Below are positions 10,042-37,132 of a stretch of 64,000 bases of DNA, one piece after another (positions within the stretch are counted from its first letter, which is position 1; each line of letters starts with the position of its first letter). Below the pieces are notes generated by a model. It made no database searches. It was not told the DNA's origin and saw only the letters and a list, made by a program, of their open reading frames with translations. The stretch comes from Chrysemys picta bellii (taxonomy: Eukaryota). Position numbers and translations under genes: made by a program. The stretch spans positions 170,686,001-170,750,000 of the forward strand of contig NC_088792.1 of NCBI RefSeq assembly GCF_011386835.1, in the 5' to 3' direction.

Positions 10042-11445
10042 AGCATTTTTTAAAAAGACTCCAGAGGTGATCCTGGCAATTACAGACCTAACTTCAGTAC
10101 CAGGCCAATTGGTTGAAATTATACTAAAAAACAGAATGATCAGACGCAATATGTTGAAAGAGTCAACACAGCTTTTGTAAAAGGATATCATGCCTCACCA
10201 ATCTATTCGAATTTTTTGAGGGGGTCAACAACATGTGGATAAGGGTGATCCAGTGGATATAGTGTACTTGGGCTCTCCGAAAGCCTTTGACAAGGTTGCT
10301 CAGCAAAGGCTTTTATGCAAAGTAAGCAGCCGTGGGATAAGAGGGAAGGTTCTCTCATAAAACAGTAACTGGTTAAAAAGACAGGAAACGAAGGGTAAGA
10401 ATAAACTGTCAGTTTTCACAGTGGAGAGAGGTAAATAGCGGGTCACCTGAGGATCTGTATTGGGACCAGTGCTATTCAACATATTTATAAATTATCCAGG
10501 GGAGGGAGGGGGGTGGAGAGTAAGTTTGCAGACAATACAAAATTATTCAAGATAATAGTGTTCAAAGCTGACTGCAAAGGATCTCACAAAACTGGGTGAC
10601 TGAGCAAGAAAATGGCAGATGAAATTCAATGTTGAGAAATGCAAAGTAATGCACATCAGAAAACTAATCCCAGGTGTACATAGAAAATGATGGTGTCTAA
10701 ATTAGCTCTTATCATTCATGAAAGGGATCTTGTGGCTAGTTCTCTGAAAACATCTGCTCAGTGTGTAGAGACAGTGAAAAAACAATGTTAGAAACCAATG
10801 GGAATGGGATAGATAATAAGACAGGAAATTACATAATGCCAGAGATAATGCAACAGAGAATGGCAACAAAAATGCTTAAGGGTATGGAACAGCTTCTATA
10901 AAAGGGGAGATTAAAAAGACAGAGACAGTTCATCTGGGAAAAGAGATGGCTGGGGAGGGTGGGGGGATATGTTAGAGGCCCTTAAAATCATGAATGGTGT
11001 GAAGAAAGTGAATAAGGAAATGTTATTTACCTCTTCACAGATCCCAAGAATCAGGAGTTACCCAATGAGATTAATACACAGCAGGTTTAAAACAAACATA
11101 AGGAAGTACTTCTTTAGACAGCACACAGTCAACCTGTGGAACTTGTTGCCAGGGGATGTTGTGAAGGCCAAAAATATAACTGGGTTCAAAAAAGACTTAG
11201 ATAAGTTCATGGAGGATAGAGGATAGGTCCATCAATGGCTATTAGCCAAGATGGCAAGGGACATGACCCCATGCTCTGGGTTTCCCTAAACCTCTGACTG
11301 CCAGAAGCTGGGACTGGATGACAGGGGATGGATCACTCGTTACATTCTGTTAATTCCTTCTGAAGCATCTGGCACTGGCCACTGTCCAAAGCCAGGATCC
11401 TGGGCTAGATGGATCATTGCTCTGATCCAGTGTGGCTATTCTTAT
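10042..11445 (+). mobile_element. Decayed CR1 LINE (RT region to 3' tail) in SERPINB2-like intron
   Basis: PGNYRP-like start, KAFDKV, SVLGPVLFNIFIN, RFKTNIRKYFF...NLWNLLP, and tail ending attcttat. Confidence 0.9.
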
Positions 11446-12048
11446 CTTCATATATTCTTAACTCTCATAGGTAATAAGCACCTTGCACTGTGCCCAAAAT
11501 TACTGACTTCCTGCTTAACTTCCTTAAATAAGTTGACATCATAATTTTACCTGCTTCATGTGCAACAATACAAACAGTTTTCAAACTAATACTATCAGCC
11601 AATATTGGAATCACTAGTTCTACACATTTGGGGCCAACTTTCAATGTGATATATAGGAATTTTTGGTTATAGGACTTTCATAAATGCTAATGGGCATCAC
11701 ATAGCTAAGTCTCCAGGCATTGTGCAGAAACTGTACTATCACTGTCTCTGTGCGTATGCTTTGTTTTTTAATAATTTCTCTAGATAACTTTATATTTCAG
11801 TGTATTACAGAGCTCCCTCTTGCTCACACTGTCTATGGTGTGTCCACTGTGTGGAGATTTTATTGATAGGTTTAGTGCCCCTCATTCATATCAACACACA
11901 GTTCACAAAAAATTACTTGAGTAACTGTACAGGATATTACATGCAACTGTCACCAGTGGAGCTATGTACAATATATGATATTAGAAGTTCTGAATCACTT
12001 TCTTAGAATCGCAGATAAATAACCAGAATATTTCTTCCTTCTTTCAAG

Positions 12049-12183
12049 GCCAATCTGGAGAACTCAAGCAATATCCATGCAGGGTTTCAGGCACTTAGCT
12101 CTGAAATTAACCAACCCACTAAAAATTACTTGCTTAAAAGTGTCAACCAGATATATGGAGAAAAATCATCACTTTTCAATAAA
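12049..12183 (+). CDS. SERPINB2: SERPINB2-like coding exon 3 (ANLENSSNIHAGFQALSSEINQPTKNYLLKSVNQIYGEKSSLFNK)
   Basis: Polypyrimidine tract + caag|GCC at 12048/12049, donor AAA|GTAAGT at 12184; 135 nt; helix D / NYLLxSVN motif. Confidence 0.9.
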
Positions 12184-12594
12184 GTAAGTGAAGCAGTTCA
12201 TCTATCTGTGTAATAGGGATACAATTCATCTTTATGATTGGTCTATGACAACAAACCATACAAGACCTAAATGCAAATATTTTAATTACATCTGCAAAAT
12301 GGTTTATTATCCTTTAAGATTTATTTCTCACTGACTTTATAGATACTCATATCAAGATTACAGGTATTCTTTTTATTTGCTTTTCTGGACTGGACTGTAT
12401 CTATACATGAACATTCATAGATGAGTAAATGATTGATAACATATATAACTAAAAACATTTTGCTTCTCTGAAGACAGAGCTTTATGCTCCTAGTAAACTG
12501 TGTCATAACATGAACTCTCTTTTCTATTTGGCAGTAGTTGGCACAGATATATTGCTAAATAATATGTAAGACTTGTCTCTCTCTTGCCTTGAAG

Positions 12595-12712
12595 GAATAT
12601 TTACAATTGATTAAAAAATATTACCACACAGAGCCACAAGCTGTTGATTTCATGGGAGCAGCAGAAGAAGTCAGAAGAGAAATCAATTCCAGTGTTGAAT
12701 GCCAGACTGAAG
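12595..12712 (+). CDS. SERPINB2: SERPINB2-like coding exon 4 (EYLQLIKKYYHTEPQAVDF...INSSVECQTE-G)
   Basis: Acceptor gaag|GAA, donor AG|GTGAGC at 12713; 118 nt ending in phase 1, the canonical size. Confidence 0.92.
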
Positions 12713-13598
12713 GTGAGCTCAGGACTGTTCTTTTACCATTTACAAAGAGACATCATGTATTTTCCTACCCTAAATTGTTTATGAGGGGAGAGAGAGAAAA
12801 CGTTGACATTCCCTTTCAGTTATAATACTACTCGCACCACAAGGAAAAACACTGATGACTATTGCTTTCCATTTGCACAAATATTTATTATAACAATTTA
12901 ACCTTCATGTGTTTGAAGGCAATAAGGTACCACAGTGTTTGACCTGATACAAATACTTACATAGCAAAATGTGTTTCATTTTGATGGGATTCCATGCAAT
13001 GTGTTTGGGGGGTTCATTTTCTGTTATAAATAGTGTCATGAAACAGTCTGACAGAAAGGGTACATTCTGCTGAAACTCCTCAGAGGAGTTTGTAGGCCTT
13101 TTCTCCTCCAAAAATAGAAAGGGGTAAAGATGTTTCAGCACCAGGGTGAGATTCTGCAGCCCGAGAGATAAACTATGAGCCTCTTATATCTTTATACTGT
13201 ACTTTTATCACGTGTAGGCCATACTCACCACAGTAGTATCTATAAGCCTCACGCAAAATTAGTTTCCTCTCTTGGAGGCCACACTGGATTTTTTTTTTAT
13301 TTTGACACATCCCCACCTCTTCCTTTTTTTCTTCAGTCTTCTTTCTCTGTCAATGGGAGGAATCTAGATTAAGACTATCAATCGGGGTTATTACTAGCAA
13401 GAGGAAGCCTGAGTAGGGCAAAGTCACTGAAGGGGACCACAGATCCCAGCCCAATGTTTGAGGATATTTCACAATAGTCTCTTAAGACAGGAAGCTGCCC
13501 TACAAGTATGATCTCAATAGCACATATTCCAAAACTCCTAAATTTACTCCAAGCAGAAAAGCTGCACAAATATATGACTGTCTCACTATTTCCTAAAG

Positions 13599-13741
13599 GT
13601 AAAATCCAGGCGCTATTGCCTGTCAACTCTGTTGATTCACTCACCAAACTGGTGCTAGTCAATGCCCTCTACTTCAAAGGAAACTGGGCAAAGAAATTTA
13701 AGGATGGATTTACAAAGGAACAACCTTTCAGAATGAACAAG
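13599..13741 (+). CDS. SERPINB2: SERPINB2-like coding exon 5 ([29 protein letters not shown]...FRMNK)
   Basis: Acceptor taaag|GT, donor AAG|GTATGT at 13742; 143 nt; [11 protein letters not shown] serpin motif. Confidence 0.93.
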
Positions 13742-13921
13742 GTATGTGACTAAGCCATGAAATGTCATAAATGCTGGTGGACTGGAACAGATAGAAAAGC
13801 TAGGGAGAGACTCAGTCCCTCCATTTTCAAAAGCCTGCCGGTCTCTAAATCCTCACGGTGTCAGAGTTGTTTTAATTAAATCATAAGAATTCCCCTGCAG
13901 TATCTGCAATTCAAACAGCAC

Positions 13922-14037
13922 TAGGGTGACCAGATGGCCTGATTTTATAGGGACAGTCCCTATATTTTTCTTATATAGGCTCCTACTACCCCCCACCCCA
14001 TGTCCAGATTTTTCACATTTGCTGTCTGGTCACCCTA
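13922..14037. mobile_element. Short hAT-like MITE
   Basis: 13-bp perfect TIR TAGGGTGACCAGA / TCTGGTCACCCTA; TSD degenerate. Confidence 0.7.
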
Positions 14038-14112
14038 CACAGTGCACTCAGTTCAACCAACAGAGGAACTGACAATACACAGAAGTGAAACTTAGGGTTC
14101 AGGTCTGTTTTC

Positions 14113-15447
14113 AGGCTGTGTTTACACAGCAATGTCAGCCTCGGGTTAGTGGGACTCAAGTCAGCTGACCTGTGTCAGAGAACCCTGGGCTTGAGCGTCT
14201 ATATTGCATTTTAACACTAGGTTAAGATTTTCTGACCAGTGCTTGAACCTAGGGCTCTGGCATCCACACTGCAGTGCACAGACCAGAGTCAAAGTAAACA
14301 TATCCTAAGTGCCTAGTACCCCACACCCCATAATGTTGACACTGTAGCCTATTGCCCACCCTGTTTCCTAACTGTGAGGGTGCTACTGATGGGACTTAGA
14401 TGCCCACAAGGCGCACAGGAGTACATAAACCACATAATGAGCTCCTTTGGTGGCTGTCTCAGTAGAATGACTGCAGTTTGAGAAGGCTTTTTTCTAATCT
14501 CAGAATTGGGCTCTCCAGCTCTAGGCCGAGTCACATTGGCAGGAAAATACCCAAGTGCACCTGTAATGAGGAGAACATCGGTCTCCAGGGCTGTCAAACT
14601 ATTGAAATGAAACTTTTCAATTCTTAATTTTTAAAATGAGAAGCTCAATGAAGGTGTTTTTCTTTGGTTGGGTTTTTATTTATTCTTGTCTGTTTGAAGT
14701 TTGACATAAAATGAAGGTACCTGAAGAAAAACACACACCCCAGCCTGGCGGCTGCTGGCTGTGGAGTGGTGAAGTGCATCCCCATGGCCAGAGTGCAGTG
14801 TGCTCCAGCACCCTGTGGGCTCCCTTATGCCTGCACCCACTGTATCCCGGGAGGCAGGGATCAAGGATCCCCAGGGGGCTGCGGGAAAGTTTTGGGGCTA
14901 GCTCCCACTCACCACCCTCACAGTGCTCACTGCACCCCTGCAGATGCAGCTCCAGGGAGACCGGGGGGCGGGGGCCCGGTAGCAAGGGACAGAGAGCAGA
15001 TTGGGACCAAGCACTGATGGGGAGGGATGACCCCCAATATCCCAGCGACTAGGAGCCAGCTCCTGCCTGTCAGCTTTGCTCCCTGCTCCGGGCAAGCTCC
15101 ACGCAGCAGCAAGGAATAGCTGGAGCAGGAAGTGGGAGCGGGTTCAGCCAGGCAATAATGGCACTTCCAGCCACTGCTTTGGCTGCCTGCTTCTCTTCGC
15201 TGGGAACTCTGGGATATAGCCGGAGGACTTCTGGGTCCCGAGTCAAGTGAGGGCTGCGTGCACACAGGAAACCAATAGGGCTCAGACCCTAGGTCCCAAC
15301 TAAACACTGGCTGGGGCCCTCCAGCCCTGCAGGATCCTGTGACCCTAGATCTGAACCCTAGGTTAGCACATTTGGAGTGTGGATGCAAAGGGGGGTTGCC
15401 TTGAGCCAGGGCTCAAACCCGGGCTTAAACTGCTGTGCAGACATAAT
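14113..15447. mobile_element. Composite GC-rich DNA-transposon remnant (Harbinger-like ends)
   Basis: ggctgtgtttacac start and gtgcagacata end; GC-rich interior; internal structure unresolved. Confidence 0.35.
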
Positions 15448-15641
15448 CTCAGTATCAAAACTGAGAGGTTGAAATATCAGCATAAATAATGACAAATAAA
15501 TTGGTTCTATGAAGTATCACTTTTTAGTAACCTAACTCATTACAAGTAACACAGGCAAGAAAAATTAATGTTAATATTTAACTATATTGTTTTCACCTGA
15601 TCCTTTAAAAGTGGCATTTGTCCTCCTTTGCCTTGTTGCAG

Positions 15642-15809
15642 AATACAACTAAGCCAGTGCAGATGATGTTCCAGAGAGAGAAATTTAATTGGACCTACAT
15701 ACAAACAGTGCACACCCACATTATTGAGCTCCCATATGTCAATAATGACCTGAGCATGCTCATACTGCTACCAAATGACATCAGCGATGACACCACTGGC
15801 CTAGAAATG
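15642..15809 (+). CDS. SERPINB2: SERPINB2-like coding exon 6 (NTTKPVQMMFQREKFNW...TTGLEM)
   Basis: Acceptor ttgcag|AAT, donor ATG|GTAAAG at 15810; 168 nt. Confidence 0.93.
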
Positions 15810-16647
15810 GTAAAGAAATCAATCATATTAATACGGGGAATTCAATTGTTTTTACGTCCTACATGTTTATATGGCTGCTGTTTGATAGTAGGTGACACTC
15901 CATTCTTGTATTAAGAACGGGTGAAAAGATCTGGCTCAGGAAAAAATAAGAACAGCCCCAAAACATTGTCTAACACTCAGCGAATCTGAGCCTTTTTTGA
16001 CCTATGACAAGATTTTCACAGACCCGACACTTTTTTGCACTTCTTGCTGTCATCCAGTCCTAGAAGAAGCAGCCCCAAAATCCCCCAAGAAAGGCAGTTC
16101 TTTTAGCACAAGCAAAACTAGAGACTACTAGAACCCCAGACAAAAAGCCAGGATAGAGGGGAATACTTCATACTAAACAAATATCTACATCTTTGAAGGT
16201 TTCCCAGCACTAATCTGTAAGGACACCAGAGCCAGCAGTGCCCTTTCTCCGGCAAGACTCCCACTAACTTTAATTGGAGTTTTGCAAGGGGAGAAGCTCT
16301 GCTGGATCAGTTCCAAGAAGGGATGATGGAATTGCCATCATCTTCATTGTTCCTTTCCAGCTCCCCTCTTGAAAAAATACTAGGTGGCCGGATTTCCAAA
16401 TGTATTTTCATACAATAATATTTTAAATAAGGAAAAATATAACTTAGAACAACTCAGCTAACAAATACTGACTTAAGTATATGTGTAATTAATTAACAAT
16501 CATACTTTTCTGGTAGATTGCATGCGGATAAGCTAGAATGCCAGAAGCTCAACAGATACAACAATAAATTAACTGGGTTACTATTACGTAAAACAGGCCT
16601 CTGCTGCTATTACACTACAAATATTCAACACTGAAAGTATTCACTAT

Positions 16648-16929
16648 GTGGGGTCAGGAAGGAATTTTCCTCCAGGTCAGCTTGGCAGAGACCCAGGAGG
16701 GTTTCACCTTCCTCTGCAGCGTGGGGCATGTGTCACTTGCTGGTTTGAACTAGAGTAAATGGTGGATTCTCTGTAGCTTTAAATCTTTAAATCAAGGTTT
16801 GAAGACTTCGGTAACTCAGCCAGAGGTTATAGGCCTATTACAGGAGAGGGTGGGCATGATTCTGTGGCCTGTGATGTGCAGGACGTCAGACTAGATAATC
16901 GTGATTATCCCTTCTGGCTTTAAAGTCTG
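16648..16929 (+). mobile_element. CR1 3' UTR fragment
   Basis: ggtcaggaaggaattttcc ... gtcagactagat ... cccttctggctttaaagtct tail. Confidence 0.65.
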
Positions 16930-17149
16930 TTCAAACTTCCAGTTACTGCATTAACCTGCTGTAAGAAAACACACTGCTTTACAGTTCAGAAGACACCTGT
17001 AAACTAGCCAGAAGCTTTTCAGTGATCTTCACTATATTTGTAAACCATCTCTATAGTTTCTCCATTCAGGATTGTGAAGGACATCAATGTTAAAGAAGTT
17101 TCATTTTCACTGTGTAATTTCTGATTCTCTCTTTTTTAACTAACTGTAG

Positions 17150-17554
17150 CTAGAAAGAGACTTGACGTATGAGACATTATCCAGATGGACCAGCTCAGAA
17201 ATGATGGAGAAAATGGATGTGGACGTGTATCTGCCCAGGATCAAAATGGAAGAGAGTTATGACCTCAAATCTACTTTGAGCAGCATGGGGATGCGAGATG
17301 CCTTCAGTCAGGACCGAGCTGATTTCAGAGGGATGTCTGAGAAAAATAATCTGGTTTTGTCAAATGTTTTTCACAAGTGCTTTGTGGAGATCAATGAAGA
17401 AGGCACAGAGGCTGCAGCTGCCAGTGCGGCTTCTATGACATCACGAAGTCTCATTTCTGCCATTCAGTTTGCAGCAGATCACCCTTTCCTCTTCTTCATC
17501 AGGCACAATAAAACTAAGACCATTCTCTTCTTTGGCAGATTCTGCTCCCCGTAA
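17150..17554 (+). CDS. SERPINB2: SERPINB2-like coding exon 7 with reactive centre loop [15 protein letters not shown]|[14 protein letters not shown], stop TAA
   Basis: Acceptor ctgtag|CTA; 405 nt; inhibitory hinge; P4-P1 MTSR versus human PAI-2 MTGR (recalled). The exons sum to 1245 nt = 414 aa. Orthology rests on motifs and position, not a tree. Confidence 0.9.
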
Positions 17555-18195: not shown

Positions 18196-18464
18196 ACAGT
18201 CTCATGAGTTATACTGACTTAAGATAGGCATGGCTAGCAACATAAAACCATTTGAATGTAAATGTTTTGTAATCTTTACATTTCTACTGGCATTTTTTCT
18301 TGTTTGCAGACTGCTTGCAAGTGTTCTATTTCCTCTGCAGATAACATGCCAATGTGCAAGTGTTGTACAAGAAACAACTGTGTGATCTATAAGAAATAAA
18401 ATGCATTTTTCTTACAACCATCTGCTTTGTAATAATTTTACTTTCAGCCAGCATCATACTAGGG

Positions 18465-19220
18465 CAGAGGTGGGTAAACTACAGCCCACGGGCCAGATTT
18501 GGAGCGCCAGCCATTTTAAGCCAGCCCTCGAGCTCCTGCTGTGCCACAGGGTCTGGGGCTTTCCCCACTCTGGCGCTCCAGCTGGGGAGCAGGGTCAGGG
18601 GCCACTCCAGGCTGCTCCTGGAAGCAGTGGCATGGCCCCACTCCAACTCCTACGCGTAAGGGCAGCCAGGGGGCTCCGCTCTGCATGCTGCCCCTGCCCC
18701 AAGTGCCGCCCCCACAGCTCCCATTGGCTGTGAACTGTAGCCAATGGGAGCTGCAGGGGCCTGTGGATGGGGCAGCGCGCAGAGCTGCCTGGCCGCGGCT
18801 CCGTGTGGGAGCCAGAGTGGGGACATGGCCGCTGCTTCCGGGAGCTGCTTGAGGTAAGTGCTGCCCAGAGTCTGCACCCCTGAGCCTATTCTTGCGCCCC
18901 AACGCCCTGCCCCAGCCCTGATCCCCCTCCCACCCTCCAAACCCCTCGATCCCAGCCTGGAGCACGCTCCTTCACTCCAAACCTCTCATCCCCAACCCTA
19001 CCCCAGAGCCTGCACCCCCAGCCGGACCCCTCAGCCCCTGTCACACACCCTACTCCCCCTGCCCAGCCTGGAGCCCCATCCTGCACCCTGAACTCATTTC
19101 TGGCCCACCCCAGAGCCCGCATCCCCAACCAGAACCCTCACCTTCTCCCGCACCCCAACCCCGCCATACAATTTCTATTCCCAGATTTGGCCCTTGGGCC
19201 AAAAATTTTGCCCTCACCTG
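18465..19220. mobile_element. Non-autonomous hAT element
   Basis: TIR CAGAGGTGGGTAAA / TTTGCCCTCACCTG, perfect 8-bp TSD TACTAGGG. Confidence 0.88.
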
Positions 19221-19403
19221 TACTAGGGACTAGTTTTCCACTGCCTTCTTCTAGTTTTATGACGGAGTAACCTCACTGAAATCGATGGAGTCACACTGGT
19301 GTAAACTAGGGCAATGGAGAATCAGGCCCTAAATATTTATCTGTAACTATCATGCAGTATGTTTATGCAGAACCCATATCTTCACACATTTTGGTGTTGG
19401 AGC

Positions 19404-21350: not shown

Positions 21351-22290
21351 CCAAAACGCAGCCGACAACACAAGTAATTCCTTCTCTCTCACAGGAATCT
21401 GAGGTAATGTAAATATTCGTATAGACATAATTAACTTTCTTTGAAACTTCTTTTTAACTACTTAAACCATGCAAGGGCAGATTAAATGATAAATTAAATG
21501 TTATGCAGTAAAACAGGGATTGCACATTTTCATTGTAAGTTTAATTTAGATTTCAATTCTTAGAAAACAGAGTGCAAGTATTATATACTTACAGAGTTTA
21601 AGAAAAGATACTGATATGGAGCAAAGGAATCAAAGGAAGAATTTTCTTGAGTAGATGACAAACCTGTTCCTTAAAATCTTAGATTAGATAAGTAAGGATA
21701 AATCTATTCAGGTGGTAGTTCTTGCTGTGAGATGGTACAACACAGCAAATTAATGAGTCAAGCACTAAATTGTTGTTCCCCTGAGGGGGAAGAAAAAGAT
21801 TTTTATTCTGTCATCCTCTTGTTAGTCTTCTCATAACAAAAGAATCCATGACTTAGAATGTGTTTGGATGCTCCATAATGCTTTGTTGACAGCCATGGAA
21901 CCCCAAAAGGGCAAAGACTGAGGCCCAGATTATCAAAGGTATTTAGGCACCTAAAGATGCAGAAAGGTGCCTACTGGTATTTTCAAAAGCATCAAAGCAG
22001 GTTAGGTGCCTAATTCATATTGAAATCTTTTTATAACAGTAAAGAGTGTGCATGATATGATTTGTGTGTTGTACAAGTACCTAGGGATCCATTTACAGCA
22101 GAAACTATAGGGCAAATAGTCTAAGGGAGTCTGGAATCATTGTCACTTCGATACATTTTCCAGTTTCTGAGGAAAGTTAGTTTATGATACAGAGAAAACA
22201 ACACAAGCTGGAGACCAAAGGAAAAATCTTGACTCCAGTAAAGTCAAACTGTTATACTCTGTCTTCATATATTTGTCTTAGGTTTCAGCA

Positions 22291-22458
22291 ATGGACTCTC
22301 TCTCAGCATCAAACGGTAGCTTTACTCTTGACCTTTTCAAAAAGCTGAATGAATCTTTTAAAGGCAAAAACATTTTCTTTTCCCCTTGGAGTATTTCATC
22401 TGCTCTGGCCATGACTTATGTGGGGGCAAAAGGTAACACTGCAACGCAGATGGCTGAG
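22291..22458 (+). CDS. SERPINB10: SERPINB10/MENT-like serpin, coding exon 1 of 7 ([22 protein letters not shown]...TQMAE)
   Basis: Acceptor tag|gtttcagca, ATG 22291, donor GAG|GTAGGT at 22459; 168 nt; [15 protein letters not shown]...MAE as in chicken MENT (recalled). Confidence 0.9.
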
Positions 22459-22708
22459 GTAGGTTGTGAAATTTGACTATGTACTGTATATATCTCGAGA
22501 TGACAAATGGTTCCTACACACGCTACAACAACCTGATACTACAGTATTAAACACAATGTCTTTGAAGGAATGGTGAATGGAAATGCTGGGTAGACTATAG
22601 GGAATAACAAATTCACTACAATTTTAACTAATTTCAGAATTTCCCAGTAACTCTCTGTACTCTACACTGTTCAGGTACTCTGGGCCAGATCCAGTGTTCT
22701 GTTCAAAG

Positions 22709-23148
22709 GGAAAGCTAAAATTGAAGGTCAAGTTCTAAACTACTGGGGCAACTCCCTGTAAAGAGGAGTTCCAGGTGGCAGCTCCTGGCCCTATTAGCTT
22801 GGGGGCTTTCCTGAGGTGAAAGGGGGCTTGGTCGGAGCACACTGATCCTGGGCAGCTGAGTGGCTCCTAGTAACTTCTCCATGTGTCTCCGTAACTTCCC
22901 TAGGCAGAGATCTCCTTTATTTACCTCAGTTTTCCAGAATTCTCTTTGGATTGAGGTTCTCTGAATCCAACAGGTAACCCACTGAGAGGGAAAAGTCCCC
23001 TACTCACACTGAGGACCCCATCATTTCTCAACACCTTTACTAGCCCCTGCATCTCACTTGCTCCTATACTTCCCAGAGTGGTGCTGCTGGTTTGCTAGAT
23101 AGGAGCCACCCCAATAGTTTAGAACCTGACCTTCCATTTTAGCTTTCC
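22709..23148. mobile_element. Unclassified MITE-like element with 40-bp inverted repeats
   Basis: 22709-22748 versus reverse complement of 23109-23148: 37 of 40 identical; no clear TSD. Confidence 0.65.
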
Positions 23149-23951
23149 GTTAAAACTCAATTTAACATTATTGTAAACATTTTTCTAAGATGTGAATATC
23201 AGCGTTCTGTACATAAATAAATGCCAATACTGAAAACGTGGCTTGGTTCGTCCATAGCTCTTCCATGACAGTCGGCTTACACGCACAATTGAAACCTTTT
23301 CAGTTTAGTCCTATTTCAGTCTATTTACATTTGCCTGAATTTTGCTAATAAAAATGATAAAGTTGCATAACCATTGTAATTTGCAGGGATCATACCTTGA
23401 ATTGTGTTTTGTTGCTTCTACTACCTCTGCTTTGAGCATAAATATATCTGATCATTACTATTTGATGGCTCTGTGATTACACCTTCATATGGCCATTCCG
23501 TGTACTCTGCAACTAAACTTCATTGTCTTTTTAATATAGCTTGTAAACCCTTGGGGGAAGCACTGAACCTTTTTATATTGTACAGCATCTAGCACATCAA
23601 TGATGCCCAATAATAAACAGAGTACAATAATAAATGGCTGAAACCATCATGAATTTCACATGGTCGGACTATATGTCAGAGTTAAGTTCCACCTGATTCA
23701 TAATGATGATCTGTTATTAAGCCAGCAATGTGACTGTGTGGTTATGACCTGGGTCTCAGTTACATTCAAATCATCATTGAAAATCATAGATATGGTGTCC
23801 TTAGCATGCTAAGTAGCAACCATCTTTGCTGACTAATTATAATAAATTGGAGGTTTTGACAATTAGGTCACTAGTAATTAATTTGTGTGTACATTTGTCT
23901 TAGATAGCGGTCTTCAAATATATTTACTATTTTTACAAACTCGGCTTGCAG

Positions 23952-24038
23952 GTGCTTCATTTTAAGAAAACTACAGGAACCGGAGGCTGTTTGCAGGTGA
24001 CAAGAACTTCTCGTGGGAGGCCAAAGAAAAGGAAGATG
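23952..24038 (+). CDS. SERPINB10: SERPINB10/MENT-like coding exon 2, CD/M-loop with AT-hook and NLS (VLHFKKTTGTGGCLQVTRTSRGRPKKRKM)
   Basis: Acceptor cttgcag|GTG at 23951/23952, donor ATG|GTATTC at 24039; 87 nt, open, phase 0/0; RGRP codons 24012-24023, PKKRK 24021-24035. Not in the ORF track. Confidence 0.88.
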
Positions 24039-25376
24039 GTATTCTTTAGAACAAAAATAAATCCGCTGTCTTTCTGGGAATAGGAAAGTTCAACAGCGGC
24101 ACTAGTTTTGATCAGGCTATTGGTTGTTTTCAGCCTACATCTATATTGCTCCCCTCACCCTGAAAAATTGTAGTTAATAACCAATTAAGATTGCTTAAGT
24201 GCAAAACCCACTCACTCAAACCTTCAAAGGCAGGAAAGGCACCTTGATTCACACTCCTGAACAGCAAGGTAATACGCCACTGACTCTGCACCTCCCCAGG
24301 GAACTCCCTTCCACCTCACATATGTACAGATGGACCACACACACCCACACCAATGCAAAACCTGAACTCTGACTTCAGAGACTGGATAGCTACAGACATA
24401 TCCTACAGCCATATGTGCAGTTGTGAAGGGTATGATGTGTCAATATAAAGATGGAAAGCATGATGTGGAAGTTAAGGTGGGAGTGGGGTATGTGACAATA
24501 TATTGAGTCTAGGGAAGATTTGGAAAGTGTCTGTGGGAAGGTAGGAGAATGGCCAGGTGCATGTGGTGGTGGCGAGATGGGCGGGGGAAGAGACGGTACC
24601 CCTATTTCCCCAGCAGATGCATTCTGATGAATCTGCCTTGGTTCATTAGACTGGAGGGGGGAGCTGCCTGAAGTGTTCTGTTCTTCGGACAGCTCTAAGG
24701 ACAAGCCCCTTTCCTCTCATCATTTTGGGAGTGGGTCAGGATAGGGGTGGATGTTCTTCCTGAAGAGGTCTCAAAAGCCTCTGTGCCAGCATTTTCTGCA
24801 GGTGAACCAGCTGTAGTTCTCAGCAGGGAATCCATGGCTTCTGAACTAAGGACAGTTTGTTAGACAAGGTCTTCTGCTTTTTAAGAGAAACAGAGGCCTC
24901 TATCTCTCACCTTCTAAGTCCCCTAACTTGCTCCTCTTTTATAATCCCTCAGTAATGGCACCCCGTTGCTGCTTCTAGTGCAGAGGGAAAGTTATCCCTC
25001 ATCCCCAACAGAGGTGTGCTCCATCAGAGATGTGATTTCCACCAGAGTTGTATGACCCTGTGTTGAATATCACAGTCTCCATTGCGCAGGAGTGGAGCTC
25101 AAACTTTAAGTCCCACCTAAGCTGTAGCTCTAAGTACTCACCTGATAATGTTTGTAAAAGTCTTTGCAACAAGGGAGACACTGACCTGCTCACTATCCAG
25201 TGGAAACAATCTGATTACAGACAATTCAGTCAAATGCAGAGTCAATAAACAGAAAAAACAGAGGAATCTGCCGCGCCCTACCCCCCAGTAATTTCTGTCG
25301 AGTGTAGTAATCTTAGGAGTTACAAAATTTTCATAAAGAAAATGTGATTTCCAAGTTCATTGTGTCTTTTTTAAAG

Positions 25377-25514
25377 GAATCTGAGGACTGCAAAGCTGAA
25401 GACATTCATTCTGAGTTCCAGGCATTAATCTCTTTAATCAACAAACCCCAAACTTCTTATTTGCTTAAAACTGCCAACAGACTGTATGAGGAACAGACCT
25501 TCCAATTCCATAGT
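25377..25514 (+). CDS. SERPINB10: SERPINB10/MENT-like coding exon 3 (ESEDCKAEDIHSEFQALISLINKPQTSYLLKTANRLYEEQTFQFHS)
   Basis: Acceptor ttaaag|GAA, donor AGT|GTAAGT at 25515; 138 nt; IHSxFQxLIS and YLLKTAN match bomapin (recalled). Confidence 0.9.
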
Positions 25515-25867
25515 GTAAGTTGAATACTTTTACAAAGCTGAAGAGAAAGTTTTGAAAGATATTTATGACACTCAATGATTCAAGTTATTAATAGAGCAGA
25601 TCGAAAATTTTCCAAAGGAACAATTTGCCAATGGGAAATGCTGATGTGATAAAACTGAAATGTTTTGTGGGAACATATAGATTTTGTTTAAATTTCTGAT
25701 GAAAAATTATCAAAACTCTTCATTTCAATAAAGTCAAAGTGCTTTGTTTTGACATTATCTGTTTAACTTTTATATTAGATAGTATACATTTATATTATTA
25801 CTTATAGTTCATATTATATACAATTGAAACAAAGCACTTCAACCTTGTTAAAATGGAAAATTTTCAT

Positions 25868-26347
25868 GCATTCTAAGGCCAGAAGGGACCACAGTCATCA
25901 TTTAGTCTGACCTCCAGAGAACATCCCCAAAATAATTCCTAGATCAGATCTTTTAGAAAAACATCCAGTCCTGATTTTTAAATTGTTGGTGATGGAGAAT
26001 CCACCATAAACCTTGGTAAATTGTTCCAGTGGTTAATTACTCTCACAGTAAAAAAAATGTACATCTTATTTCCAGTTTGAATCTGTCTAGCTTCAACTTC
26101 CAGCTACTAGATTGTGTTATACTTTTCTCTGAAGAGCTCACTGTTATTTGTTTATTCCCTATGTAGGTACTTATAGAATGTAATCAAGTTATCTCTTAAC
26201 CTTCTCTTTGTTAAGATAAGTAGATTGAGCTCCTTGAGTCTACAACTACATTTTCTGTTCCTTTAACCCTTCCCATGACTCTTCTTTGAATCCTCTCCAG
26301 TTTATCAACATCCTTCTTGAATTGTGGGCTCCAGAACTAGACACACA
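25868..26347 (-). mobile_element. CR1 3' fragment
   Basis: ctaaggccagaagggacc...tagtctgacctcc tail in antisense, continuing into the end of ORF2. Confidence 0.75.
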
Positions 26348-26676
26348 GTGCCCAGTTATCCTTATGATTAGATCATTTTGATATTTCCTAAAAGAATGTT
26401 TTCAGAATTATCATTTCACAGAAAATGTCAAAATTTTAACTTTTTGTTCTGATTTGGGATGAAAGGGAATTTCCAGTGGAATTGAAATAGAGATTTAATC
26501 AGCTCTAATTATTAAATATACTGTACCATAGATCTTACTTTTAAATTTTATCTAGCTTAAGTTGAATTGTACTCTCTTTAGTATTGTAGTAGTTATGTTG
26601 TACAGCAATCTGAATGTTTTTAAGTGATGCCATTTTGAATTTATTTTAATAGCAAATTTTCTCTCCTACCTTTCAG

Positions 26677-26794
26677 GGATACATAGAATTCGTTAAAAAC
26701 TATTACCATGCAGAGCCCCAAGCAGTTAACTTTAAAAAAGCTGCAGAACAAGTCAGAAAAGAAATCAATTCCTGGGTTGAAAGCCAAACTGAGG
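26677..26794 (+). CDS. SERPINB10: SERPINB10/MENT-like coding exon 4 ([40 protein letters not shown])
   Basis: Acceptor tttcag|GGA, donor AGG|GTAAGC at 26795; 118 nt. Confidence 0.93.
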
Positions 26795-27401
26795 GTAAGC
26801 TAAGAACAAACAATCCAAGCTTTGCTCTTCTCTCACTATAGTTGCTAATTCCTTTTGGGTAGGTGGCTGCATTTTTACATGTGTTCCTCCTGTAGTCAGG
26901 CACTAGTGGAGCTAATGTGGAAATTGAGGATGGAGAGGTGGACAGTTGAACAGCTTCAAGTGTCTGATTCAGAATATTTTGAATTCAATGGAAAGACTCC
27001 CATTGACTTCCCAAGGACTTCAAAGAAAGAAGGGAGCAGCCTTTAGAACCTGATTTCCTGATTCTAAAGAATCAATAGCTCCTGCAAGGCCTCTGGTCTC
27101 ATGGGCCACCGTCACTGCTGGAACTATAGGAGCAGGATTTATGACCATGGACTCCCTTTTTCATGAGCCTGATTCTTCACAGCCTAGCCCCTTGTGTTGT
27201 TATTTACTCCTGTGCAAAAGGAGGATGAAATGGGTATAAAATGCTACCATTCTGATTTGGCAGAATTTAGAAACTCACTCAGAGATCAGGGGTTCTGAGG
27301 CACATACATTCTCAATGGATAATTAAAGAGAAAGCAAAATTAGAAATAGCCACTTGCTGTACTGCACTGGAATAAAAACACCATTCTTCTCCTTCTGAAA
27401 G

Positions 27402-27544
27402 GGAAAATCCAGAACCTGCTGCCTAGAGGTTCTGTTGATCCCAACACCGCACTGGTCCTGGTTAATGCCATTTACTTCAAAGGAAAATGGGAAAAGAGAT
27501 TTCTGAATGAAAACACATCTGAGAATCTCTTCAGATTGAGCAAG
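27402..27544 (+). CDS. SERPINB10: SERPINB10/MENT-like coding exon 5 ([29 protein letters not shown]...FRLSK)
   Basis: Acceptor gaaag|GG, donor AAG|GTATGT at 27545; 143 nt. Confidence 0.93.
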
Positions 27545-28023
27545 GTATGTTTCACTAATGTTCATGCTGTTGAACAGTAAGAAACCTCCATATAGCATGA
27601 AAATCTTTCACCCACAGTTCATATTCCATCATAAAACTATTGGTAGCTCGACACATGGCCTAACGTAAATAACTGTGACAATTTTAATATTTAGTTAGTA
27701 AAACTACTACATAGTTTAAGCAAAGATTTGAAAAATGGGTTTTAGCTTCAAGAGGAGACTGATGGGCCCTATGTTATTAGAAACATTAGTGAATACCCTA
27801 ATATATGCCAAGTCCAGCAAATTTTTACTTTAGCAATGCTCAAAACCAGGTTCATTATGAAAAATGCCAAAAGACACGTCACTAAGTCGGTTCTAGCTAT
27901 AAGAAATCACAGATTATTATGTGGTAACACTCCTACTGACAGATGCAAGTCTATAATTCACGGATTTGGAAATGAATAAATGTGAATACCCTGTTAATGT
28001 GAAGGCTGTGCAGCTCTATAGAC

Positions 28024-29127
28024 CAGTAGGTCTCAAACTTTTTTTTACTGGTGACCCCTTTCACATTGCAAGCCTCTGAATGTGACCCCCCCTAATAAAG
28101 CGGAGGCAAGTGGGATTTGGGGTGGAGGTTGACTGCTCATGACCCCTGAGGGGTCCTGTAGAGGGGCTGGCCAGGGCTCAACCCTCTCCGGGGTGGCAGG
28201 GAGCCACACCAGCTCACTACACACAGCTGAGGTTTGGGGAATTAGTCCGGCCGCGGGAGTCTTTCCTGGCGGCCCCTGCGGAGGCAGAAATAAGTACAGT
28301 TATGCCAGGGCCCTAGGTCAGGGTGGGGCAACAATGACTCAGGCCCTCAGGCAGGGGCTGAGCAATAATGCTATAGCAGTACCAACATAAACAGTAGCAA
28401 GCCCAGGCGCTAGGTCAGGGCAGGGCAATGAGTCAGGAGCTCAGGCCCTCCGGCAGGGCTGAGCAACAGTAGGCCCAAGCCTCCAAAAGGCCTGGGAGAG
28501 GGGGAGACTGCCACCCACGGGTTGGGTGGCAGGGGGGACGCAGGCCCTTCCACTCCACTGCGTCCCAGCCCAGGGTCCTAGCAGCGGCAGAAGACCTGCT
28601 GCGGTGTCCGTGGGGATCCTGGCCGCAACACACTGACATGGGCTCTGGCAGTGCTGCAGCCAGACTAGGGTTGGCTGCCCCCAGGCTACTTTCTGACTCC
28701 CCCTCTTGTGGTACCTCAGTCACGGCGGTGTCCTCCGGGGCGGTCCAGCACCATGGGTTCCTCGGGGTAGTGGGCGAGCAGCAGGCCCGGCAGCTCCTCT
28801 GGGTAGTGAGCACAGGGCAGGTCCGGCAACTCCTCCTGGTCGCGCGTGCAGGGCAGGTCCGGCGAGTCCTGGCGGGCACCTTGGGCCACGATGGTTTCCC
28901 AGTCGCGGGCTAGGCTAGAGGCATCTGGCCTCCCCGGCAGCTAGCCTTTAGTGAGCTCTGAGGGCAAGCGTTTATACTTCCGGGTCGCCGCCTGACCCTC
29001 TGAGGGGCGGGCTCAGAGCACCCTAGCTCCGCCCACCCCGGCCTCCGGATGGGCTCATCCTTCTCCGGGCAGGTGGGGAACCACACGGCCTCACTACAGG
29101 TCCCGACCCCCAGTTTGAGAACCCCTG
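28024..29127. mobile_element. hAT MITE interrupted by a solo LTR
   Basis: TIR CAGTAGGTCTCAAACT / AGTTTGAGAACCCCTG, perfect 8-bp TSD CTATAGAC. Confidence 0.88.
28157..29098 (-). mobile_element. Solo LTR (942 bp)
   Basis: TGTAG...CTACA termini, perfect 5-bp TSD GGTCC (28152-28156, 29099-29103), CpG-rich; orientation inferred from minus-strand TATAAA at 28971-28976. Confidence 0.85.
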
Positions 29128-29237
29128 CTATAGACTATAGTAACATTTTCAAAGGCACCTAAGGGATTTAGGAGCCCAAATCCCATTTTTCAAGTGATTT
29201 AGGAGCCTAACACTCATTTAAAGTCATTGTGAGTTAG

Positions 29238-29590
29238 ATTAAGGCTACAAAGCACCGTTGTGATAGTCTAATCTGACCTCTTGCCTAACACAAGCCACAG
29301 GACTTCTCTGTACTAAATTCCTGCTTCAAGTCCAATAACTGTGCTTGAACTACTGCATATCTTTTAGAAAAATAGCCAATCTTGATTTTTTAAATTTCCA
29401 GTGATGGAGAATCCAGCACAACCCTGGGAAGTTGTTCCCATGGTTAATTACTCTCGCTGTTAAATATTTGTGCCTTAATTTCTAGTCTGAATTTGTTTAG
29501 CTTCAACTTCCAGCCATTGGTTCTTGTTCTACCTTTATCTGCTAGATTGAAGAGCCCTATATTATCAGTTTCTGTTCCCTATGTAGGTAC
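29238..29590 (-). mobile_element. CR1 3' fragment, same family as 25868-26347
   Basis: Shared blocks gatggagaatcca, ggttaattactctc, tagcttcaacttccagc. Confidence 0.75.
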
Positions 29591-30365
29591 CGATAGTCTA
29601 TGGAACTCAGGAGTTGCAAACACATAGGAAGTGAAGTTGTAAAGGACTTTATGAAACTCCTGCAAACCAAAATTACCTCTCATGCAGCTAAATATAGCAC
29701 ACACACACATCCTTTGCACAGCACTGCTCCATAACTGAAACTAAGTGACCTTTCTGAATCCATGAAACTTTACAAACACTGAGTTTTTGTATTTATTATC
29801 CATGAGGCATCATTAATATGTACAGAATCCACTCTACAGCTGCTACTGCTAAGCCACCAGAGAGTCAGCCAAAGGCAGCATTGTTCTGTTTTGCCATGGT
29901 GGTGAAGATACCAAAGCAGCCCCTGCATGCAGTGACCTTTCTCCTTGTACTTAGAGGTTCCCCAGAATTTTCAGTGTTGGGAGCTGTGCACCTCCCTCCA
30001 CTCTGTCTCCTCAAAGGTCTTCCCTGTAATAGGAACAAATGTCAGGAAACTCAATGAGGTGATCCTTGCAGAATTTTCTGGCTCCTCTGTCCCACCTTCT
30101 GTGAGTTATTATGCATGTACTGGGGAACAGTGGAAGATGAGTCCAGGTCATGGAAAACAATGCTTTGAGACAAACAACAGGACAATTAATATTGTCTCAT
30201 GAAAGGAACCCTGTTAAACCATGCAATCAACTTTGGTTCATAAAACTGTATTCAAACTTTTATTCTTATTTCATCTGAAGCAAGTCATACATATTTACTG
30301 ATAACCCATATGTTTCAAAGAAAGAAGTAATATTTATTTTCTTATGGAGATATATAATTTCACAG

Positions 30366-30533
30366 ACCAAGACTAAACCAGTGCAGATGATGTTTCTAAA
30401 AGATACATTTCCAATATGCTACTTGGAAACAATGAAGGTCAAAATTGCTGAGCTTCCATACGTTAATAATGACCTCAGCATGCTCATCCTATTACCAGAT
30501 GACATTGAGGATAAATCTACTGGTCTGGAACAG
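30366..30533 (+). CDS. SERPINB10: SERPINB10/MENT-like coding exon 6 (TKTKPVQMMFLKDTFPICYLETMKVKIAELPY...STGLEQ)
   Basis: Acceptor cacag|ACC, donor CAG|GTAAAA at 30534; 168 nt; DTFP motif shared with MENT (recalled). Confidence 0.93.
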
Positions 30534-31831
30534 GTAAAACCATTATACCATATTGCTGTTCCACGAAAGTGGAATTTAACGTTTCTTCAGTGTGAGACAG
30601 CTACGGGATAATGTTCAGAATGAGTTTAGCAACATCCTGTACATTAATGTATATGGCTGTAAACAAATGTATGGCATACAAGTGCCTTTTTGTGATCAGG
30701 ATAAGAACTGGGAAGTGAAACTTAGCAGTTCTGACGACGACACCACCTAAGGTACAATGTTAAGGGGTATCATTGGCATGATGTATTATTATCTAGATGA
30801 AGCCCAAAAGAGCACAAGGAATTTTCCAGAACAAATAAACCAGGTCTGTGTCCCAGAATAGCTAACAGCCTAGTTTCAGATACGATGCAATGAGAGAGCA
30901 ACAAACCATAAGGAAGTAGGGTGAGGAAGTAGGCGGCTTGTAGCAGGGGGATAATTGGTTTCGACATGTGCAAGTCTTGTGGATTCCATAAAGTCATACA
31001 TGTATTTAGGGAATACTTGATTCTCTAGTATGATATGCAGGATTTTCAGCATTCTGTTGGGATAGCTGCATTGAATGGGAAGTATAGTACTTGCTATACA
31101 TTATGTGGTGATTCCTCTAAACAAGAATTCCAAACTGGTTGTTGAAGCCAGTTCTTTTGTCCTGTTTCTGTTGCCTACAAAGTGGACCACAATCTGACTC
31201 TCTGGCCCCTTGCAATTAATGCTCTTCCAAGAGCTGTACTCCCTTTCCCCCTGTTTTCTGGGCTCTCTTTATCTAGTGAAATAAGTAATTACTAACCCAC
31301 CTTGCAAGGGACTAAGCTCCTCACAGTAGGTGCTGAGTGCCTCAACTCAATGGGAACCAAGAGAGCTCAACAACATAAAAAATCAGATGCTCCGTTTGCA
31401 AGCACATCAGGGCAAGGACCATATCCTCTTACTTGTCTGCAAGACCCCATGCACACCAATCATATATAGTTGTGATGGGACAAGTCTTCCTTGCATGCAC
31501 ATGTAGATGTTCTATTAACATTAACAGGAGCTCTATATGTGCATAAGAGGGGAACATTCCCATGTATGTTTAAATAGAAAAAACAAGGAACTCCTCTATT
31601 GACCCAATCCTGCATTCAAGGTCACCTCCCATTTAGATAAACGTGAGCATACATCACTTAGAACCTTGCAGGATCAAACCCTATTTGCATGTAGCACATC
31701 CTATAATGATGGCAATAGCCGGGGTGGTAGCAAAGTATGTGTTTCGTGCCTTTATGATGAGTTTTTTTCATTTACTCATGATTTCATTTTTGCTTTTTGT
31801 CTAATTCCCTTTCTTTCTTAACTCACTACAG

Positions 31832-32236
31832 CTAGAGAGGGAATTGACCTATGAGAAGTTATCGAAGTGGACCAGCCCAGAAATGATGAAGACAACTGGA
31901 GTGGAGTTGTTTCTGCCCAGGATCAAGCTGGAAGAGAGCTATAACCTCAAGTCCACTTTGAGCAGTATGGGGATGAAAGATGCCTTCAGTCAGAGCCAAG
32001 CTGACTTCAAAGGGATGTCTGAGCATAATGATCTGTTTTTGTCACAAGTTTTTCACAAATCCTTTGTTGAGGTCAATGAAGAGGGCACTGAGGCTGCAGC
32101 TGCCAGTGCAGTCGTTGTAGTAGTGAGATCATCTTTAAATCATGTAAGATTTAAGGCAGATCACCCTTTCCTCTTCTTTATCAGACACAATAAAACCAAC
32201 AGCATCCTCTTCTTTGGCAGATTCTGCTCCCCCTAG
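31832..32236 (+). CDS. SERPINB10: SERPINB10/MENT-like coding exon 7 with [18 protein letters not shown]|[14 protein letters not shown], stop TAG
   Basis: Acceptor ctacag|CTA; 405 nt; the exons sum to 1227 nt = 408 aa; NHV.FK resembles MENT NHVLKFK (recalled). Confidence 0.92.
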
Positions 32237-35479: not shown

Positions 35480-36560
35480 GATCTTTTGTTCTGGTAGGGA
35501 AAAAAAGTGACGTGGGGGGGGGGGTCACCGAATTTACAGCACAGCCTAGAGGTCCCTATCAAGCCCCCCTCCCCGCCTGAATCGTTCCAGCACGTCTCTC
35601 CTCCATCCAGATCTCTGTTCACCCCTCTCCTCCGGCAGCGCTAGTGGGGGCTTGGAAATTGGGGCCGCGTTTAAACTTATTAGGCAAAAGGCAGAGAAAG
35701 GGCACCAAGGTTCTCTCAGCACGAGCAATGAGCGTGTGCACACGCTCGGTAGTAGGACAGCCTCGGGCAACGCGATTGCAAGTAACTCTGCCGGATAAAC
35801 ATCGGTCCTGCAAGCCTCGCCCTCCGCAGCTGGTGCAGGAAATTAGGGACGGGCGGGGGCTGAGGGATGAAACGCCCCGTGGTGGCTCCCGGCGCTTCCG
35901 GGCTCTAGGGGGCGGGATCCCGGGGCTCAGCGGCGCTAACACAAGCCCGAGGCCGCCTCCCCTTTGCCCAGCGCCACCGGAGCCACTTCAGCGACCTGCG
36001 CGCCCGGCTCCCCGCAGCAGCCGCCGCCCGATTCCGCACCGGTCCCGCAGCACCGCCCCTGGGTCAGTCCCGGCCTGGCGCCGTCTGTCCGGGGCCGCCT
36101 GCGTGTGGGGCGGGTCCTGCCGCGCTCGCTGCCTCGGGCGCTAGAAACCCCGAGCCGGGGGCGGGGAGCGGGGCTGCGACTTGGGTTTAGTTTCCAGCCC
36201 GGGGCTCAGGGCCGCTCGCTTCTGGCGGGCGGGAGGAGACGCTGGGAGCCGGAGTCCGCCCCGGGCATCGGCCGCACGGTTGGTTCAAGCAGCCGAGGGC
36301 GGGGGGGTCTCGCTGGTGTCCGGTGAGTTTGTTTCTCTTGCAGTGACCGCTCCTGCTCCGGGCGCTGGGACAGTTTGTGCAGTGGTGGGGTGAGAGCCAG
36401 GAACCGAACTGTAAACCCGGAGTGTGATGGAAACACCGCAAGCCCGGGGGGGCGGCACCCTGTGCTCCTGCTGGGATGGGCGGGAGTGGGGGGCAGGTCT
36501 GCCTGGGGGGGAGAGGGGAGGAGTCAGGCTCCTAAGAGACCAGACACCTGAACCTTGAAT
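35480..36560 (+). promoter_or_regulatory. CpG island, likely SERPINB6 promoter with non-coding first exon
   Basis: Sharp GC- and CpG-rich island in AT-rich flanks; several GGGCGG boxes (e.g. ~35851); strong donor CCG|GTGAGT at 36323 and second donor GG|GTCAGT at 36063; about 6 kb upstream of the SERPINB6 ATG. Confidence 0.7.
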
Positions 36561-37132
36561 CCACAAGTCACAATAGGTGTCTCAGGTCCTTTCCCTGCCT
36601 TGAGAAGGTGGCTCAGCCTGTGGTTTCCTCCTCCCAGTAAGACCAGGTGGAGGAGGAACCCTGTGATTCTGTGCATCTTGCCCTGGGTTTTGCAGTGTCC
36701 GCCAAGCAAGGACCCTCCCCTGGTTCCCTTGCCGGTGGGGTAGGACAGAGCTGGTGGGTGTGGTACACACAGCACAGGATGCTGGTACTTGGGATTCATT
36801 AGATCCGTTACGCGTACAAGGGTCCGGCCTTGGCTGCTGACTCTTGTGGGAGAGGCTCCGGAGATGGGAGGTGCCTGGCACTGCCATTTACTGAGCCACT
36901 AAAACAGGGCACTTGTCTCTAAATGACTGCCCTAGAGCTCTGGATTGAAGAAGGCAATAAAGCTTGCAATGAACATACCATGATTATTTTCAAAAGCTCT
37001 GTATAGTGGCATAAATCCGCACTACCCATGACAGAACTGAGCCTGAAGATTTTACAATTTGCTGCAAGCCCCACATGTTGTTTTGACTGGTATTTCAATA
37101 AGTATATAATGTAGACCTATTAGTCTCATGAT

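Follow-up and report, generated by a model that had tools for sequence, protein, structure and literature searches.

A cluster of four clade-B serpin genes

The window, that is, the whole 64-kb stretch of Chrysemys picta bellii DNA analysed here, carries four clade-B serpin genes, all located on the + strand and arranged in the order PAI-2-like, SERPINB10, B6-like and B1-like; the human gene order is B2-B10-B8. The four genes are the following:

5405-17551 (+): gene A, PAI-2-like, with a loop exon at 8631-8738 encoding 36 residues, VLHFNKVGGAGVDITTVKPRRAYSKMEE... (VLHFNKVGGAGVDITTVKPRRAYSKMEELPCISVKK)
22291-32236 (+): SERPINB10, from start to stop codon
42418-49416 (+): gene C, 7 exons, best matched by 'serpin B6(-like)' proteins from birds and reptiles
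from 57501 (+), ending beyond the window: gene D, best match leukocyte elastase inhibitor (SERPINB1-like)

In SERPINB10, seven coding exons bounded by AG and GT give a 1,227-nt ORF that encodes a clade-B serpin of 408 residues. Its exons are listed below, a slash within a sequence or between two coordinates marking a splice border.

21368-21403 (+): 3' end of non-coding exon 1, donor GAG/gtaatg at 21403/21404 (the loose 5' letters of a contig from run X2 are exactly 21368-21397, and the genome reads TCTGAG/GTAATG)
22282-22458 (+): exon 2, first coding exon, ATG at 22291, MDSLSASNG...TQMAE, acceptor tcttag/G at 22281/22282 (genome and contigs)
23952-24038 (+): exon 3, long form, the CD-loop (M-loop) exon (sequence, translation and RNA contig joints)
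23952-23996 (+): exon 3, short form, 45 nt, VLHFKKTTGTGGCLQ, with an internal donor CAG/gtgaca at 23996/23997, after Gln71 (contig joint and RefSeq isoform X2)
25377-25514 (+): exon 4, ESEDCKAEDIHSEFQALISLINKPQ..., helix D (joint 25514/26677 in 4/4 runs)
26677-26794 (+): exon 5 (both flanking joints in 4/4 runs)
27402-27544 (+): exon 6 (past 27544, the loose end of the contig from run X2 matches the first letters of exon 7)
30366-30533 (+): exon 7 (ORF model, contig support being the loose end from run X2)
31832-32236 (+): coding part of exon 8 up to the stop codon, with the reactive-site loop and Cys406 (32225) (ORF model)

Position 22276, considered as acceptor of the first coding exon, results from an aligner overhang of 6 nt, one of them mismatched, and was rejected in favour of the true start at 22282. 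The gene thus comprises seven coding exons and one non-coding exon, and exon 3 encodes the CD loop alone; it therefore has the 8-exon structure known for the clade-B serpins that carry an extra CD-loop exon (PMC1308813). The Pfam Serpin domain is found with an E-value of 2.4e-135 over residues 7-394 of the short isoform described below (P0274), and in alignments the protein begins level with residue 1 of other clade-B serpins, without any N-terminal signal extension. The reactive loop displays the hinge GTEAAA and then Arg373 (codon at 32126) followed by SSLNHV; this arginine is the P1 residue according to our own count in the alpha1-antitrypsin register, in which the hinge G is P15.

The CD-loop exon and its motif

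The + strand at 23952-24038 reads ttgcag/GTGCTT...AAGATG/gtattc, i.e. an exon of 87 nt in phase 0 with AG and GT borders, whose frame 1 gives VLHFKKTTGTGGCLQVTRTSRGRPKKRKM, both remaining frames containing stops. It is preceded by an exon ending with ...TQMAE/gt at 22458 and followed by exon 4, which opens with ESEDCKAEDIHSEF at 25377. The preliminary description, which drew attention to this 87-nt in-frame exon, was right about its borders and reading frame, as the exon is part of an uninterrupted serpin ORF of 408 codons. It also placed Cys69, SRGRP and an exact KKRKM in the loop, all of which stand at these residues in the 408-aa model. Its statement that the exon had been missed by the ORF track was mistaken, since the ORF list contains an ORF at 23946-24083 (45 aa) that spans the exon, and the RefSeq models include it. 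The features encoded by the exon are the following:

23988-23990 (+): codon of Cys69, a CD-loop residue and the counterpart of bomapin Cys68 (numbering in the 408-aa model)
23997-24038 (+): 42-nt alternative cassette encoding VTRTSRGRPKKRKM (RNA contig joint; conserved across orthologues)
24012-24023 (+): AT-hook core RGRP, residues 77-80, within the cassette
24024-24035 (+): nuclear signal KKRK, residues 81-84, within the cassette, Met85 closing the exon

At E <= 10, the Pfam AT_hook profile matched neither the turtle orthologues nor the exon peptide nor chicken MENT. As chicken MENT itself escapes the profile, this null result carries no information on the turtle loop. The Chelonoidis orthologue, 91% identical and with the long loop, gives a confident serpin fold in AlphaFold (mean pLDDT 86.6), in which residues 63-94 have a pLDDT below 50, and the CD loop of this orthologue is thus predicted to be exposed and flexible.

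Transcription and alternative splicing of the loop exon

Four small public runs, one from each of four studies and with tissues given as codes, provided the Logan contigs that were aligned to 22200-27650; one of these runs is on record as RNA and the three others are RNA by guess. The two junctions that the preliminary description had predicted on either side of the exon are both found in these coded tissues, 22458/23952 in 4/4 runs and 24038/25377 in 3/4 runs, and the downstream joints 25514/26677 and 26794/27402 are found in 4/4 runs, all with GT..AG ends. Furthermore, five consecutive exons are joined in a contig of 3,251 nt and in another of 1,124 nt.

These joints bear on the possibility that the 87-nt stretch is nothing but a chance open frame or a seldom-used cryptic exon that plays no role in the mature mRNA. 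The small size of the exon and its distal donor, ATG/gtattc, which is no strong consensus site, could suggest such an origin. However, contigs from three studies join the exon exactly at both borders, the frame is kept, and position, phase and sequence are conserved across sauropsids. The cryptic-exon explanation is already refuted by the RNA contig joints.

The exon has two donor sites. A joint that skips 23997-25376 (1380 nt, GT..AG) is present in the runs labelled X1 and X2, and corresponds to the use of the proximal, internal donor. This removes 42 nt in frame, i.e. VTRTSRGRPKKRKM, so that the AT-hook and the NLS are lost and Cys69 is kept. The long joint is found in three runs and the short one in two, both being present in X1; contigs give the presence of the forms and no isoform ratios. 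In each of its two runs, the short-form joint is carried by a single contig, whose shorter side covers no more than 27 nt. The same form is found in annotation: the Chrysemys picta bellii protein 'serpin B10-like isoform X2' (P0274, 394 aa) is the window model minus 14 residues, and the short form is annotated in six turtles (Chrysemys, Trachemys, Malaclemys, Pelodiscus, Chelonia and Natator), Pelodiscus having the short isoform X2 alongside a 408-aa isoform X1. The internal donor, which removes exactly the hook and the NLS, was overlooked in the preliminary description and is an addition of the present analysis.

Orthology of the turtle gene

Two maximum-likelihood trees, both built without mammalian B10, place the turtle gene inside a sauropsid SERPINB10/MENT clade (support 100/98 and 100/99) that excludes the PAI-2-like, B6-like, B1-like and other groups. 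Within this clade the gene tree matches the species tree, and the duplication that produced the bird MENT proper and MENT-like genes is placed after the crocodilian split (support 96/88 and 97/92); therefore, the turtle gene is the pro-orthologue of both bird paralogues. The preliminary description had also grouped the gene with MENT and SERPINB10, an assignment on which the two trees and gene order agree.

The grouping with bomapin, for its part, rests on Foldseek ranking, database names and gene order. In a Foldseek search of Swiss-Prot with the Chelonoidis model, chicken MENT ranks first at 56% identity, and ranks 1-9, 11 and 12 are all MENT or Serpin B10, the mammalian ones showing 50-55% identity and PAI-2 45%. 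The names used in RefSeq and UniProt for turtles and crocodilians are 'serpin B10-like', 'serpin B10' and 'heterochromatin-associated protein MENT(-like)', so that the guess, made in the preliminary description, that databases might already use MENT-like labels turns out to be correct.

Some sources proved unsuitable for the assignment. A PDB search with the last exon as the single query puts human PAI-2 slightly above chicken MENT, and as gene A and the B10 gene give the same PDB ranking, the last exon alone is unfit to assign orthology. The search of cluster representatives with the last exon returned distant or fragmentary matches, none of them with the loop motif, and the names given automatically to these representatives ('leukocyte elastase inhibitor-like', 'serpin B6-like', 'ovalbumin-like') were of no help in assigning orthology.

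Gene A was considered as a second B10 copy, given its 'serpin B10-like' labels, and rejected as such, since its 36-residue loop and its reactive site are PAI-2-like: the loop aligns with echidna PAI-2 and with the long-loop proteins of other reptiles, and the reactive site is MTSR/S (human PAI-2, MTGR/T). The public names of its orthologues, 'serpin B10-like' and 'Serpin family B member 10', look like a misnomer. Within the window, no further serpin exons were found between genes A and C, and SERPINB10 is therefore single-copy here; nor does any ovalbumin-type gene separate SERPINB10 from gene C in the window.

Distribution of the AT-hook and nuclear signal

The aligned loops of sauropsid orthologues end as follows:

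Window, Pelodiscus, Pangshura: SRGRPKKRKM
Chelonoidis: ...KKRKL
Eretmochelys: ...KKRRM
Tuatara: SRGRPKKRKM
Alligator: SRGRPRKRKM
Gharial: SCGRPRKRKM
Ostrich: SRGRPKKRKM
Neognath MENT proper (14/14 sampled): SRGRPKRR(K/R)(M/V/L)
Neognath MENT-like: SLGRP, SPGRP, SLRRP or SPARP, then KKRKM

An unchanged SRGRP is seen in tuatara, alligator and ostrich, in five sequences from turtles and in 14/14 bird MENT proper. As SRGRP(K/R)(K/R)R(K/R)M recurs at one and the same loop position in other turtles, tuatara, crocodilians and birds, the motif is no chance match, and its presence in turtles, crocodilians and tuatara shows clearly that it predates birds. As far as the motif is concerned, this bears out the proposal of the preliminary description that the AT-hook is older than birds. 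From the aligned loops, the association of AT-hook and KKRK in a single cassette is the ancestral sauropsid state, KKRKM being the old form and the chicken KRRRM a derived, galliform one. Therefore, the 'union' of the MENT hook with the bomapin NLS, which the preliminary description saw in the turtle loop, does not stand as such, since ostrich MENT-like and tuatara B10 have the identical SRGRPKKRKM; what turtles display is simply the ancestral arrangement.

In squamates, all the recovered proteins end the loop exon at the position of the turtle internal donor (...SSQ/E...). Past this donor, the Anolis genome (L001:4384-4545) reads VISYHHRGKVENRN, and that of the gecko Eublepharis (L002:3180-3300) reads V-I-stop, with AAGATAGTATT to be compared with turtle AAGATGGTATT; the gecko AAGATAGTATT is possibly a relic of the distal donor. 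As the sequence beyond the proximal donor is degenerate in both Anolis and gecko, the cassette has decayed in squamates. Squamate SERPINB10 thus uses the proximal donor only and its old hook/NLS extension is intronic. In Hemicordylus, isoform X1 uses a third donor, which adds HER.

Among amphibian relatives, those from salamanders and frogs carry ...SGTGGC(T/S)KKARKE... or a shorter loop, with GTGGC and Cys as in turtle, and RGRP is absent from those sampled. They form a polytomy with PAI-2 and B10 in the tree and are at most putative orthologues. A search for homologues starting from the axolotl protein gave amphibian loops and echidna PAI-2, mammalian B10 being absent from its results. The mapping of RGRP gain and loss that the preliminary description had called for, from reptiles to mammals, covers sauropsids and amphibian relatives here, and gives a pattern of retention and loss among sauropsids.

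The bird duplicates have divided the ancestral traits between them (P0151-P0269). MENT proper keeps SRGRP and has lost the P1 Arg, and MENT-like keeps an Arg-type loop and KKRKM, with a decaying hook. In ostrich and emu, the MENT-like type alone was recovered.

Comparison with MENT, bomapin and other AT-hook proteins

MENT is the classic example of chromatin remodelling by a serpin and, to our knowledge, studies of it have been confined to chicken. Human bomapin, as far as we know, has no RGRP in its loop.

In chicken MENT (O73790; PDB 2H4R, 2DUT), M-loop and AT-hook bind DNA, the M-loop being needed for both DNA binding and nucleosome-array folding, and the NLS corresponds to residues 80-84 (PMC3139888, PMC2648895). 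The protein is an inhibitor of cathepsins L and V whose reactive loop also bridges arrays (PMC2648895, PMC3139888). MENT-M3, with a triple Gln at positions 99, 107 and 109 of the D-helix, keeps chromatin binding and has its condensation activity abolished (PMC2648895). Bomapin carries an NLS in its CD loop, a C68-C395 disulfide and a P1 Arg, and it inhibits trypsin and thrombin (PMC2874763). The AT-hook core with flanking Lys/Arg is described, in Aravind and Landsman (1998) as reported in PMC3139888, as a motif of the DNA minor groove.

The turtle protein belongs to the same clade and the same clade-B type with an extra CD-loop exon as chicken MENT, and in both the loop closes with SRGRP, a basic NLS and Met at the same exon boundary, KKRKM at residues 81-85 aligning with the chicken KRRRM at 80-84. 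However, birds have two paralogues, of which chicken MENT is one, with a changed and longer reactive loop, of the Phe/Tyr type at P2 and with Thr/Ser at P1, whereas the turtle gene is unduplicated, has a P1 Arg and KKRKM instead of KRRRM, and has an annotated hookless splice form. The loop Cys is another difference, as it is present in turtle and missing in both bird MENT and MENT-like. Ostrich MENT-like (named 'MENT', P0225) has an identical SRGRPKKRKM, a P1 Arg, 408 aa and 67% identity to turtle, whereas the neognath MENT-like, or Serpinb10a, has a degenerate hook and a reactive loop one residue shorter.

The likeness to human bomapin, with which the gene shares its group name in RefSeq and UniProt, lies in the Cys pair and P1 Arg: C69, C406 (of 408) and R373 in turtle form a bomapin-type pattern (Cys68, Cys395 and P1 Arg), and the claim of the preliminary description that bomapin features persist in the turtle protein holds for these residues. 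Identity between human bomapin and the Chelonoidis orthologue is 54%. The CD loops differ in length, the turtle one being 7 residues longer than the bomapin loop of 22 residues described in the literature. With HMGA-type AT-hook proteins, the turtle loop has in common an R-G-R-P core flanked by Lys/Arg; those are architectural proteins with multiple hooks, whereas the turtle protein has a single hook inside a serpin loop.

Other traits can be followed across the family. The P1 Arg is found in the window gene, other turtles, tuatara, crocodilians, squamates, ostrich, amphibian relatives and PAI-2-like genes, whereas bird MENT proper has Thr, Ser, Gly or Leu at P1 in a longer loop (14/14 sampled). 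At D-helix positions 99/107/109, chicken has K, K, R and the window, Chelonoidis, Eretmochelys and Pelodiscus proteins have Q, K, Q. The net charge is +6 for the turtle protein and +12 for chicken MENT.

A proposed nuclear serpin with a removable, putative DNA-binding cassette

The explanation that we favour, with a probability of roughly 0.75 for the whole, is that 23952-24038 is the CD-loop exon of a single SERPINB10 gene, that its 3' part is an ancestral hook/NLS cassette included or removed through two donors, and that the gene encodes a nuclear, DNA-tethered inhibitor with a P1 Arg. Of this, the exon structure, the transcription, both splice forms, the orthology and the distribution of the motif are established by the present analysis. 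Use of the distal donor at 24038 keeps the cassette and gives the 408-aa protein, and use of the proximal donor at 23996 removes it and gives the 394-aa protein. The long form would be imported into the nucleus and then tethered to AT-rich DNA by its hook; there, it would act as an inhibitor of trypsin-like proteases of the P1-Arg, bomapin type, possibly under a redox control via Cys69-Cys406. The short form would be largely off chromatin. Nuclear location and DNA tethering of the long isoform, and their absence in the short one, are inferred fairly confidently. Full chromatin compaction in the MENT style is possible, and less likely than a simple tethering to the nucleus or to DNA.

Such compaction is what the preliminary description had envisaged as a possibility: the turtle protein would work as MENT does in chicken, compacting the chromatin of granulocytes and of erythrocytes that keep their nucleus. 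An intact AT-hook and NLS are found at the same loop place as in chicken MENT, whose M-loop is needed to bind DNA and fold arrays (PMC3139888, PMC2648895), the long isoform is transcribed, and the net charge of the protein is positive. However, chicken MENT belongs to a paralogue found only in birds, whose branch is long (0.29-0.35) and whose loop is devoid of P1 Arg, whereas the turtle reactive loop is of the ancestral Arg type, and it is this loop that mediates array bridging by MENT (PMC3139888). Furthermore, the K, K, R of the chicken D-helix is replaced by Q, K, Q in turtles, chicken MENT has twice the net charge of the turtle protein, and a hookless splice form coexists with the long one. 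Ancestral reactive loop, missing D-helix charges and lower basicity all weaken the compaction hypothesis, which we consider improbable.

The cassette could also be purely an NLS, the protein being a bomapin-like nuclear protease inhibitor in which RGRP only lengthens the basic patch and does not bind DNA specifically; lying beside a basic NLS, RGRP might indeed be a mere part of the import signal. KKRK(M) closes the loop exon, where the bomapin NLS also lies, and the Cys pair and P1 Arg are bomapin-like. In addition, the second bird paralogue swaps the first Arg of RGRP (SLGRP, SPGRP, SPARP) and keeps KKRKM, which indicates that the hook is under weaker constraint than the NLS in that paralogue. 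However, the invariance of SRGRP in turtles, tuatara, alligator, ostrich and 14 MENT proper sequences would be hard to explain for a mere spacer, and an AT-hook core flanked by Lys/Arg is an established DNA minor-groove motif. An NLS without any DNA-binding role thus seems rather unlikely to be the whole story, and tethering of the long isoform to DNA remains the preferred reading.

Evolutionary implications

A broader scenario, possible but distinctly tentative, can be drawn from the distribution of the cassette and of its donors. The ancestral sauropsid SERPINB10 would have been a DNA-tethered nuclear serpin with a P1 Arg, in which the choice between two donors switched hook and NLS on and off. 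Turtles would have kept this switch, squamates would have fixed it in the 'off' position, and birds would have split it between duplicates, the intact hook staying with the copy that gained inhibition of cysteine proteases (MENT proper) and decaying in the other. If this is true, the DNA binding of MENT is older than its specificity for cathepsins, and turtles offer a natural pair of isoforms.

The locus shows that the hook/NLS cassette goes back to the ancestor of living reptiles and birds, and that it was first borne by a bomapin-like, Arg-specific inhibitor. It separates traits that are confounded in chicken, namely an old, putative DNA tethering on the one hand, and the bird-specific loop of the cathepsin-L/V type and highly basic surface on the other. 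The turtle isoforms with and without the cassette would provide a clean comparison for the effect of the hook itself.

In the open-access literature, no papers were found on a non-avian MENT or on an isoform that skips the cassette; the open-access papers that spell out the full name of MENT are chicken work or passing citations, with no turtle or reptile study among them. The gene and both isoforms are already annotated, and the locus is no new kind of system.

Other features of the window

An extra copy of the first coding exon of the SERPINB1-like gene lies at 55800-55898 (+), 1.7 kb upstream of 57501, and is probably a duplicated exon fragment. In two consecutive introns of SERPINB10, at 25840-26385 and 26932-27113, contig depths reach from hundreds to more than 1,600, with 90-95% identity and many internal joints; such pile-ups are typical of a transcribed interspersed repeat present in many copies, and do not come from the B10 gene. 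Between the B10 and B6-like genes, 35500-36900 resembles a CpG island, with a GC content of 0.65 and a CpG observed/expected ratio of 0.66, the values for the whole window being 0.42 and 0.25, and weaker GC-rich blocks are found at 18400-19250 and 28100-29150.
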